Shown: in pieces, positions 20,216-23,240 of the stretch
How positions within the stretch are numbered: the first letter of the stretch is position 1
Layout: every line of letters begins with the position of its first letter
Origin: Octopus bimaculoides
Lineage: Eukaryota
Reading direction: 5' to 3'
Length of the DNA: 64,000 bases
NCBI RefSeq assembly: GCF_001194135.2
Contig: NC_068982.1
Span: 102,145,276-102,209,275, forward strand
Made by a program: the position numbers and the translations under genes
The notes under the pieces: model-generated
The model's database searches: none
What the model was told of the DNA's origin: nothing
The model's input: only the letters and a program-made list of their open reading frames with translations

Positions 20216-21265
20216 TAGTAAACCCTAATATATTTTTTTTCTTAATCAATACGCCCAAGGAATACAGTCCCATGTAACTCCCTATTTTCTTGTTTCACAA
20301 ATATCGATCTACAGAATTTAAGCTGAGCATGAAGTGTATCGATCTAACAAATACGGGAGGGTTTCCGACTGTCTGACAGATAATTGCAACACAAATCATC
20401 TAAAATATATGCATACACATTTCTTTCGACTACTGCCCTCTCTCTCTCTCTCTCTCTCTCTCTCTCTCTCTCTCTCTCTCTCTCTCTCTCTCTCTCTCTC
20501 TCTCTCNNNNNNNNNNNNNNNNNNNNNNNNNNNNNNNNNNNNNNNNNNNNNNNNNNNNNNNNNNNNNNNNNNNNNNNNNNNNNNCTCTCTCTCTCTCTCT
20601 ATCTATCTATTTTTGTGTTTGTGCTCGTGTGTGTTTCTGAATTTGTGCGGGTGTAATGCCTGGCCGTGCTATTTCTTGCATGGTATGCATATTATTTAGT
20701 CTTCAGATTTTTTTCATGTACTTTCCTATATACTTCCAAACCATACCCAAGGGACCTATTGTTATTAACATTATTTCTGCTTTCAATCGTCATATTCTAG
20801 TTATCAATTTTTCCAAATATTCAATAATAATTATTGCAGATTTCTCTATTTCCTGCAACACGTTATGATCTTATGGGAGCGACACTTCGATCAAGAGAGA
20901 ATTACTTTCCCGTTCTTGTTTGGCAGCAACGATTATTGCGGATGTATGCTGAAAATTAAGGGGGAAGATGAGCTCTCGCCATGGTACACCCGTATAGCAC
21001 AGTGAGTCGAAATCTGTGAAATTCCTTTGTCGACTCCTGGATGACGTTTCCTCTAATAGAGTAATCTAGTTACTATAAATCGTCATTATCATCCTCATCA
21101 TCATCATCATCCTTCTTCTTCTTCTTCTTCTTATTATTATTATTATTATTATTCTTATTATTATTATTATTATTATTATTATTATTATTATTATTATTAT
21201 TATTATTATTATCATTATTATTATTATTATTATTATTATTATTATTATTATTATTATTATTATTA

Positions 21266-21543
21266 TATGAAAATTCACGGCTTATTTTGCTGGGTATGAT
21301 GGTAAGTGTCAGCTGTCCACAGCCAGCAGATGAAGGTGACACTTATTTACTAGTCATGCTGCAAGAACCCTGCGAAGAATTCTTGCATTTCTAAGCAATC
21401 CTTATTTTTATAGGTGTTCTACCTTCACACTTGCACCAATGTTTTTGTAGCCATGCTGTTAGTTGGGTGCTGGTACTTCCAAGTGCACCAATTACTATCG
21501 GTATCACTCCTCCCCCCCGCCCTCGTATTTCCCACTTCAAATC
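21266..21543 (-). mobile_element. R4/Dong-type LINE 3' end (RLE C-terminus plus 3' UTR) between two (TAA)n tracts
   Basis: Minus strand LKWEIR...VIPIVIGALGSTSTQLTAWL; 3' UTR near-identical to that of 22437-22911. Confidence 0.88.
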
Positions 21544-21651
21544 TTATTATTATTATTATTATTATTATTATTATTATTATAAATTATTATTATTATTATT
21601 ATTATTATTATTATTATTATTATTATTATTATTATAAATTATNNNNNNNNN

Positions 21652-21730
21652 NGGTACCATATATTTGGATTTGTACAGTTTTGTTCAAGTGAATGTTTAA
21701 GAAACCATAAGAAAATTATGTGTTTGCTTT
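21652..21730 (-). mobile_element. R4/Dong-type LINE 3' UTR fragment (same family as 45770-46257)
   Basis: Near-exact reverse complement of 45935-46012; bounded by (TAA)n and a short gap. Confidence 0.88.
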
Positions 21731-21832
21731 ATTATTATTATTATTATTATTATTATTATTATTATTATTATTATTATTATTATTATTATCGTTGTTGTTG
21801 TTGTTGTTATTATTATTTCTATTGTTATTATT

Positions 21833-22416
21833 TAAGACGTCGCACAATATCGTGATGTTGTTGATTGAAAATATTGTGTGTACCGGGGGGGGTTGTATTA
21901 TCTGTCAAGTTACAAGGACCTGACAGACAGTACTTTATGCAATATGCGTGCAGTTCCAAGAAATGCCGATTTTTGCAACACACCTACATTGTAGGGTATT
22001 TCTAAAGTTTCCAGATGTTTTTTCAGGTTGGGTGGTATTGAACCCAATGCTCCGATGACAATAGGGACAACCTGCGTATTTTACTCTTGTAGCTGCCACA
22101 TCTTTGTGATCTCAGTTCTCAGGTCTCCATATTTATCATTTTTTTCTCTTTCTTTCATGATGATATGTTGATCTCGTAGCACTGCCACGTCCATTATTTG
22201 AGATTGAGTGCGGTTTCTTAATCTGTTCATGCTGCCTTACCAGCTGTATCATCCAGTCGGTCGTACTTTGTATGTACACTTGGAGTCCTATCGTGGTCAT
22301 TTTATAGGACGTTTCAAGTTGGGTTAGGCCTCTGGCACCTTCCTTTCGTGAGAAGTAGAGCCTGTGGACGTCTGTCTTCGAGTGGTTTCTTGGTTTTTAT
22401 GGTGGATTCCACTCAA
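21833..22416 (-). mobile_element. R4/Dong-type LINE 3' fragment with internal deletion
   Basis: KTDVHRLYFSRKEGARGL joined to RLE region DKYGDLRTEITKMWQL...QVVPIVIGALGSIPPNLKKHL...LQKSAFLGTARILHKVLS. Confidence 0.9.
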
Positions 22417-22436
22417 ATTACTATTATTATTATCAT

Positions 22437-22911
22437 TTGATGAAAACTCTCAGTTTATTTTGCTGGTTATGATGGAAAGTGTCAGCTGTCCACAGCCAGC
22501 CGACTAATGTGACATTTGTTTACTGGTTATGCTTCAAAAACCCTGCAAAGAATTCTTGCAGTTCCAAGCAATGCTAATTTTTGTAGGTGTGCTGCCAATC
22601 TTTTTTTAACCATGTTGGTAGTTGAGTGCTGATACTTCCAAGTGCGACAATTAATTTTGGTATCACATCTACTCTCCTCATTGACCACAACCTTCGTATT
22701 TCCCACAGAAAATTTTCATAGTTGCTCAGTTTTTCTTCTTCTTTTTCTTTGATTCTGTTGTCACCGGGACATGCTATGTCGATTATCATGCACATTCTTT
22801 CTTTTTTTTTTTTTTCACCACAACAATATCCAGTTTCTGATGTCTGGTCAGGTAATCGCACTGAATCATTCTACCTGTCAGGATTTTGCAATTTTCATTC
22901 TTGATGACTCC
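22437..22911 (-). mobile_element. R4/Dong-type LINE 3' end (RLE domain plus 3' UTR)
   Basis: MCMIIDIACPGDNRIKEKEEEKLSNYE...WEIRRLWSMRRVDVIP...ALGSISTQL...LALLGTARIL. Confidence 0.92.
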
Positions 22912-22934
22912 TAATTATCATTATTATTATCATT

Positions 22935-23240
22935 GAGTGAGAGAGCATTGTATGACAATGGGGTACAAATACACCAAGCACCCTTTAAACCCATCATGTC
23001 TACCTGTGTGATAAGAGTACAACAAGCATATGCATCACAACCTTATCTGCGTGACATAGTGATCTCATACCAAGATAAACAACGCATGACCTCGCAGGTG
23101 GGGCCCAATTAGAATTGTTTTGTGGTCCAGTAGCCCATCCTGCTCAAAAGGTCCCTCAATAAGATCTGTTTAAGATGATGAACGCAGCACCCATGTTTCC
23201 AGAGGTGAATTATTCAAACCTCAAGGAATTCCTCTCAACA
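22935..23240 (-). mobile_element. Non-coding (TAA)n-tailed retroelement, same family as 13788-14212
   Basis: Shares ggaaacatgggt, attcacctctgg, gggccccacctgc and ends ctctctcactc+aat repeats. Confidence 0.8.

Follow-up and report, generated by a model that had tools for sequence, protein, structure and literature searches.

How do several unrelated retroposons come to lie end to end on a single microsatellite, and does each arrival prepare the site for another? The question is raised by a 2.2-kb stretch of the Octopus bimaculoides genome in which five dead retroposon fragments, all pointing in the same direction, are strung along one (TAA)n microsatellite. The stretch lies within the 64,000-nucleotide window analyzed here (RefSeq assembly GCF_001194135.2, contig NC_068982.1, positions 102,145,276 to 102,209,275 of the forward strand), and positions below are those of the window. 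We consider it likely that the arrangement arose by repeated, independent retrotransposition of (TAA)n-specific long interspersed nuclear elements (LINEs) into the same microsatellite. Insertion into (TAA)n is known for the LINE Dong in Bombyx, in Anopheles, and in the snail Biomphalaria (PMC3812793, citing Kojima and Fujiwara 2004). The (TAA)n specificity of Dong-like elements has been published for insects, molluscs, and cnidarians (PMC7998251, PMC3812793), and a Dong consensus has been reported for O. bimaculoides (PMC9115989).

RESULTS

Five retroposon fragments lie on one strand of a (TAA)n microsatellite

Read along the minus strand, the stretch consists of unique flanking sequence followed by P5, T5, P4, T4, P3, T3, P2, an assembly gap of 10 N, T2, P1, and T1, where P1 to P5 are the retroposon pieces and T1 to T5 are (TAA)n tracts (Table 1). 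T1 is followed by (AAG)7 and then by (GAT)n. All five tracts are in the sense orientation relative to the pieces, that is, (TTA)n on the plus strand, and T3 (102 bp) is at once the tail of P3 and the 5' flank of P2. The window is AT-rich and dense in microsatellites and contains 18 assembly gaps; the 18-mer (TAA)6 occurs in it 206 times, against 0 occurrences in 100 shuffles. A sequence-only reading of this DNA had described five minus-strand pieces at these coordinates, called them five retroelement 3' ends, and held each to be separated from the next only by TAA. The five pieces and their positions are borne out by the sequence. The term "3' ends" fits less well, since P3 is internally deleted and P5 may not be a LINE, and separation by TAA alone holds for the links from P2 to P5, whereas the link between P2 and P1 crosses the assembly gap. 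Each of the five pieces is dead, and nothing here implies a present function.

P1 encodes approximately the last 55 codons (..VIPIVIGALGSTSTQL..) and a 3' untranslated region (UTR) that ends in TTTTCATA. P4 encodes the endonuclease core (..PD..IIDIACPGDNRIKEKEEEK..) through to the C terminus, plus a 3' UTR; it spans homologue residues ∼420 to 508 by tblastn, or from ∼390 if the alignment is extrapolated to the 5' end of P4. P1 and P3 keep only the part of the endonuclease region downstream of this ..PD..IIDIACPGDNRIKEKEEEK core. In P3, truncated at about residue 145 of homologue P0082, residues ∼155 to 219 are joined to residues ∼429 to 517 near 22190-22200 (tblastn), and the CCHC finger and the RPD motif fall within the missing ∼209 codons; the C terminus (..VVPIVIGALG..LQKSAFLGTARILHKVL) and a 90-nt 3' UTR are retained. 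The two collinear halves of P3 meet at an AATAAT hexamer (window 22185-22205), and the loss of 209 codons may have come about by deletion at microhomology or in connection with an insertion. The motif ..(V/I)P(I/K)(V/L)I(G/V)ALGS.. is present in the translations of P1, P3, and P4. P2 matches the plus strand at 45937-46012 at 76 of 78 positions, inside the 3' UTR of a coding copy (45772-46054) whose open reading frame (ORF) ends (..TIPIVIGALGMTAKR..VLMGTAHILRKILSM-stop) just upstream of the matching segment; the 5' truncation point of P2 abuts T3.

P1 and P4 belong to one family, with ∼80% identity and indels of 12 and 14 bp, and DNA comparison gave no similarity of P2, P3, or P5 to P1/P4 or to one another. 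The proposal of four distinct families, among which only P1 and P4 are alike, is thus confirmed. Two duplication scenarios were rejected on the same data: P1 and P4 as a segmental or assembly duplicate, by their identity of only ∼80% together with the indels, and the whole train as a tandem duplication of one unit, since the families are unrelated.

P1 to P4 resemble (TAA)n-inserting LINEs with a restriction-like endonuclease

The longer fragment at 11465-12358, which bears reverse transcriptase (RT) sequence, was used to search a database and returned 857 homologues, of which the best 120 were listed; these 120 carry no clade names. A homologue search with the 93-amino-acid ORF of P4 gave no matches and no shared words. 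Among the matches listed, the closest protein was P0001 (73% identity), encoded in GCA_024449705.1 on a 2.2-kb contig without useful flanks. C-terminally complete homologues contain, in order, the RT, CX2CX7HX4C, RPD(x13-14)D with K-E-x-E-K..KY, and a PIVIGALG..LLGTAxILRK tail, and the homologue alignment A2 shows CRxC..E(T/S)xxHxxSGC and RPDI(x13-14)D..K-E-x-E-K.

A profile built from the homologues matched the solved R2 proteins 9nl3, 9nl2, and 9dou (E about 3e-14), and the match was aligned through the RT thumb, the CCHC finger, and the restriction-like endonuclease (RLE). A single-sequence PDB search with P0082 found no match; the profile search alone succeeded. In four ORFs (849, 703, 419, and 241 aa) of two long elements at the external locus L002, described below, Pfam detected only RVT_1 and a weak zf-RVT and no apurinic/apyrimidinic (AP) endonuclease domain, the copies in the window being truncated. 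Because of the R2 profile match and the lack of an AP-endonuclease domain, P1, P3, and P4 are predicted to encode the C terminus of an RLE LINE of the R2 superfamily, and the pieces resemble Dong of the R4 clade. The earlier assignment of the pieces to RLE LINEs of the (TAA)n-inserting kind is supported at least for P1 to P4.

Dong-like copies adjoin sense TAA throughout the window

Twelve listed pieces in the window touch a TAA tract, and in all 12 the TAA is sense (antisense, 0). Eight Dong-like fragments are among them; P5 and its relative at 13983-14214 show a 3' tail only, and in P2 and the copy at 25257 an assembly gap precedes the 3' tract. No Dong-like piece in the window abuts antisense TAA. 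The 5'-truncated copies at 11384, 25257, and 45772, as well as P1, P2, P3, and P4, start directly after sense (TAA)n; their truncation positions in the ORF vary, yet each adjoins TAA, a hallmark of insertion into the tract and not of a TAA tail alone. The window has 15 TAA tracts that are 24 bp or longer; 11 of them touch a piece of this kind, 2 touch only a short interspersed nuclear element (SINE), and 2 have no assigned partner.

Trains of the same architecture occur in other genomes

We analyzed nine loci around Dong-like RT genes in other assemblies (eight independent loci, L004 and L005 being one), chosen only for lying on long contigs. Three of the eight, namely, L002, L008, and L010, hold trains. 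The train at L002 has three elements on a single strand (28, 37, and 55% identity to P0082); each ends in (TAA)5-16 and is followed at once by the start of the next. L008 likewise has three elements on one strand, the last of them without a following (TAA)n, and L010 has at least four on one strand, two of which lie ∼2 kb apart, as well as a 69-bp piece with a TAA tract on either side. The train elements of these three loci represent different families (27 to 55% identity to P0082), and most are followed by (TAA)n. The elements at the other loci are solitary, with sense (TAA)n on both sides at L004/L005, L006, and L009, upstream only at L003, and downstream only at L007.

The extra elements in the external trains have the orientation of the focal element in 7 of 7 cases. 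With the two trains of the window added, the count is 13 of 13 (p about 1e-4 if orientation were random). These figures and the 12 sense contacts in the window agree with the claim that several unrelated families occupy one tract in one orientation. They also bear on an account without targeting, in which TAA-ended LINEs and SINEs would simply have accumulated in an AT-rich, recombination-poor region and would share an orientation by chance. P5 and its relative, which have a TAA tail but no 5' TAA, fit such an account, and at least one family may indeed be untargeted. However, the concordance of all 13 extra train members, the start of variously truncated copies directly after sense (TAA)n, and the published (TAA)n specificity of Dong-like elements (PMC7998251, PMC3812793) make absence of targeting very improbable.

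In the full-length external elements, the 5' end is conserved and follows (TAA)n without intervening sequence. One such end, GTCCTGGGTATGAC.., is found at L002:4117-4200, L008:8497-8560, and L010:16720-16760, and another, GGGGTCAAGGGTCC.., at L002:7906-7960 and L008:4252-4300. These conserved ends after (TAA)n argue for separate, precise insertions. They are also candidates for the 5' hepatitis delta virus (HDV)-like ribozyme that frees the RNA of Dong from a co-transcript containing TAA (PMC3774820). An Rfam E-value scan found no HDV-like family in L002, such ribozymes being poorly detected, and the copies in the window lack 5' ends.

P1 is joined to the other pieces across an assembly gap

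P2 to P5 form contiguous sequence, within which P3-P4-P5, with spacers of 20 and 23 bp, appears to be the most reliable part of the assembly. P2 stops at GGTACC against the Ns, and its relative runs at least 42 nt further; after a gap of its own, this relative ends in AAACATAAAA(TAA)n, which is also the terminus of the 68-bp piece at 46378-46446. Judged by this comparison, the 3' end of P2 is missing, at least ∼50 nt and probably ∼110 nt. On its left, the gap borders on microsatellite sequence. Because the 3' end of P2 is missing and the left edge is microsatellite, the sequence is not continuous over the 10-N gap. The gap lies between a UTR and a microsatellite, so no reading frame is at stake.

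This raises the alternative of a partial assembly artefact, namely, that a collapse or mis-join at TAA repeats has placed P1 beside P2 to P5 and that the true train is shorter. In the ORF translations, simple repeats can be seen beside at least 10 of the 18 window gaps, the 10-N gap has a TAA tract right at one edge and the mid-portion of the P2 UTR right at the other, with at least 50 nt missing, and perfect tracts of 100 to 135 bp are hard for short-read assembly, all of which would favor an artefact. In contrast, P2 to P5 lie in one contig with their short spacers and an imperfect, anchorable T3, like trains are found in long-contig assemblies of other genomes, and the orientation and flanks of P1 are as expected of a correct join. 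A mis-join can affect the P1-P2 link only, and we regard this explanation as unlikely.

Many gaps in the window are flanked by (CT)n, (TA)n, or (TG)n (e.g., 3393-3912, 15941-16682, 17887-18275, and 37795-38309), and simple repeats seem to account for many contig breaks in the assembly. The variant ATAATTTATAATAATA stands at the edges of two assembly gaps beside TAA tracts (21627-21642 and 25916-25931), and its TTTA interruption is seen again within T2 at ∼21580; the tracts may vary recurrently in this way, or the assembly may be responsible.

P5 looks like a short TAA-tailed retroposon

P5 begins with TGTTGAGAG and ends in ..CTCACTCAA. Its relative on the plus strand (13983-14214) opens at the same base (TGTTGAGAG) and closes with ...CTCAA(TAA)15, and TAA is absent from the 5' side of both copies. 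No coding similarity was found in P5, and DNA comparison showed its 3' end to be unlike any Dong-like 3' UTR in the window. ARAGORN detected no tRNA-like head anywhere in the window and so gave no lead on the class of P5 or of the SINE. P5 looks like a short, non-autonomous, TAA-tailed retroposon.

A model of successive insertions

Under the model that we favor, a Dong-like LINE would recognize (TAA)n, nick one strand, and prime there the reverse transcription of its TAA-ended RNA. Because the target is strand-asymmetric, all copies would point one way, each flanked at either end by sense (TAA)n. Reverse transcription would often stop early, leaving 5'-truncated, dead copies. Each insertion would split the tract and add a tail or duplicate the target, leaving usable TAA on both sides, and later insertions by any TAA-specific family would then stack head to tail. 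In the train described here, P5 probably came first, and its ∼20-bp tail would have been the target for P4 and P3, with duplication of the short tract.

The make-up of the train, the assignment of its pieces to families, the orientation rule, and the recurrence in other genomes are shown by the sequences, whereas the order of insertion, duplication of the target, and tract growth are inferred. The tracts flanking P4 begin with the same 15 nt, AATGATAATAATAAT (T4 being read from the last A of P4, 22437). This pattern is found at only 2 of 40 TAA tract starts and accounts for 1.5% of the in-phase 15-mers in the 40 tracts; an AATAG interruption is common to T3 and T4. These features are suggestive of a ∼20-bp target that was duplicated at each insertion, the tracts around P4 being derived from the short tail of P5. 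Because of the shared 15 nt and the lack of TAA upstream of P5, the sequence further suggests that the tail of P5 itself founded the TAA pad. The earlier proposal that each insertion leaves a tail that becomes the next target is thus no more than suggestive: it fits the shared 15 nt around P4, and P5 itself has no upstream TAA.

The short spacers also admit another reading, template jumping, in which the reverse transcriptase would have passed from the end of one RNA to the 3' end of the next within a single target-primed reaction. One or a few such compound events would have chained 5'-incomplete RNAs of different families, each with a short RNA-borne TAA tail. End-to-end template jumping by the R2 reverse transcriptase in vitro has reportedly been described by Bibillo and Eickbush. 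The P5-P4 and P4-P3 spacers, at only 23 and 20 bp, have the size of an RNA tail, and the single orientation of all pieces would also follow. However, T5 and T4 open with the same variant 15-mer, which is unexpected for tails from different source loci; P1 and P4 differ by ∼20% within one family, pointing to different ages or sources; and the external trains consist of apparently full-length elements with precise, conserved 5' ends right after (TAA)n. Template jumping is thus quite improbable as the origin of the train.

Several points weigh against repeated, independent insertion as set out above. The evidence for target-site duplication rests on short, low-complexity strings (p ∼0.015 before correction for multiple comparisons), and the insertion order is no more than probable. 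The internal deletion of P3 needs a second event. P1 is joined to P2-P5 only by scaffolding, the tail junction of P2 being unseen, and P5 may not be mobilized by Dong-like LINEs. Finally, the placement in R4/Dong rather than HERO is tentative, and HERO also has microsatellite-specific families (PMC4640811).

Other TAA-linked elements in the window

The window contains a second train and further Dong-like copies (Table 1), as well as SINE copies. The second train starts with a compound (AAC/GAT/TAA)n followed by a 5'-truncated copy of the P2 family (45772-46054, a gap, and on to 46257), continues with (TAA)n, the 68-bp 3'-end piece of the P2 family (46378-46446), and (TAA)n, and ends with a further Dong-like fragment downstream of 46601 (tblastn hit at 46656-46757). 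The sequence TAGTAATAATAACAACAATAATAATGA(TAA)nTC closes the tracts both before and after the 68-bp piece (46318-46379 and 46556-46601); this repetition may reflect a duplicated target site at least 40 bp long, or else a local duplication. The longest Dong-like copy (11384-12891), 73% identical to the protein from GCA_024449705.1, is interrupted by a gap at 12359-12596 and replaced at ∼12804 by the 3' part of a SINE.

This SINE, of ∼210 bp and with the head AGGCAGCGAGCTGGCA.., lies on the minus strand at 50719-51030 and 24800-25251. Read in its own direction, it is preceded by (TTA)24 and followed by (TTA)10, and the second copy has (TTA)32 directly at the head; it is thus tied to the TAA microsatellite in the polarity opposite to that of the Dong-like LINEs. 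Other copies are at 50386-50526, at 10390-10524, at 10618-10747, and from 12804. A divergent RLE LINE on the minus strand (41500-42355), ∼30% identical to the Dong-like homologues and carrying CRFC..H, NRPDI, and IPVIIGAL, terminates in a microsatellite of the (ACAT)n type instead of TAA and may represent a family with a different microsatellite target.

Table 1. Positions of the train, its tracts, and related features in the window
Feature	Position	Strand	Evidence or remark
Compound microsatellite (AAG)7 + (GAT)n	21066..21130	-	Distal end of P1 tail
T1, (TAA)45 with two variant units	21131..21265	-	Tail of P1, 135 bp
P1, 5'-truncated Dong-like LINE	21266..21543	-	Own translation, alignment to P4
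T2, (TAA)n with two TTTA interruptions	21544..21642	-	5' flank of P1; at least 99 bp, enters assembly gap
Assembly gap, 10 N	21643..21652	.	Hides 3' end and tail junction of P2
P2, 78-nt internal 3' UTR piece of another Dong-like family	21653..21730	-	DNA similarity
T3, imperfect (TAA)n: AAT AAT AAC AAT AGA .. (AAC)6 GAT (AAT)20	21731..21832	-	
P3, 5'-truncated Dong-like LINE, ∼209 codons deleted internally	21833..22416	-	Translation, tblastn
T4, 20-bp tract ATGATAATAATAATAGTAAT	22417..22436	-	Between P4 and P3
P4, 5'-truncated Dong-like LINE with frameshifts	22437..22911	-	Translation, tblastn
T5, 23-bp tract AATGATAATAATAATGATAATTA	22912..22934	-	Between P5 and P4
P5, putative non-coding TAA-tailed short retroposon	22935..23240	-	DNA comparison, termini
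(TAA)8, then 5'-truncated Dong-like LINE, RT to CCHC region	11359..12800	+	tblastn
Second P5-family copy with (TAA)15 tail	13983..14259	+	Both termini common with P5
(TAA)32, 5'-truncated Dong-like LINE (25257-25379, into gap), (TAA)n past gap	25156..26078	+	tblastn
Second train	45650..46760	+	tblastn, DNA comparison

DISCUSSION

The elements of the train are closest in kind to Dong and Dong-like R4 LINEs (DongAg, DongBg), with which they have in common a single ORF with RT, CCHC finger, and C-terminal RLE; like these, they enter (TAA)n in a fixed orientation, are often 5'-truncated, carry a TAA tail, and occur in molluscs (PMC3812793, PMC7998251). The difference from Dong is that here at least three unrelated Dong-like families and a non-coding TAA-tailed element share one tract. 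R2, the LINE of 28S ribosomal DNA (rDNA) to which the structures 9nl3, 9nl2, and 9dou belong, is alike in its RT thumb, CCHC finger, and RLE and in site-specific, target-primed reverse transcription into a repeated target; in our case, however, the target is a microsatellite, not rDNA, and the identity is low. HERO-clade LINEs also have an RLE, and some of their families target microsatellites (PMC4640811), but most HERO families are non-specific.

An explicit description of multi-family Dong trains was not found in the literature searched. Such trains follow directly from the known specificity, and the locus is a clear but largely ordinary example of it; the core mechanism had been published before and is not newly inferred here. 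Self-targeting clusters, nested or head to tail in one orientation as new copies enter the tails or targets of older ones, are familiar from tandem R1 arrays, from telomeric HeT-A/TART and TRAS/SART arrays, and from Alu elements inserted into the poly(A) tails of older Alu elements. In Chlorella and Coccomyxa, Zepp forms clusters of nested elements (PMC3446292). Whereas these systems use poly(A), telomeric repeats, or rDNA, here several families at once share a TAA microsatellite as their pad.

The proposed feedback of retrotransposition on microsatellite abundance is a plausible hypothesis. A wider form of the idea, which we put forward tentatively as possible though doubtful, is that the (TAA)n tracts here are self-propagating niches: a non-targeted, TAA-tailed retroposon like P5 would found a ∼20-bp tract, several Dong-like families would then enter it, duplicating the tract and adding tails of their own so that every insertion creates more target, a SINE would join in the opposite polarity, and this positive feedback, not replication slippage alone, would lie behind much of the TAA load and the clustering of elements.

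In a small space, the locus illustrates the mutual shaping of site-specific LINEs and a microsatellite. A tract of ∼20 bp seems to suffice as a target, competition for one TAA pad involves several unrelated families, and the train architecture recurs in distant genomes. For annotation, (TAA)n-linked LINE trains, rather than single long elements or satellites, are to be expected in mollusc-like genomes, and they are likely sites of assembly gaps. If the feedback operates across the whole genome, part of the TAA microsatellite load in such genomes would be explained, and the known mechanism of these LINEs would stay unchanged.

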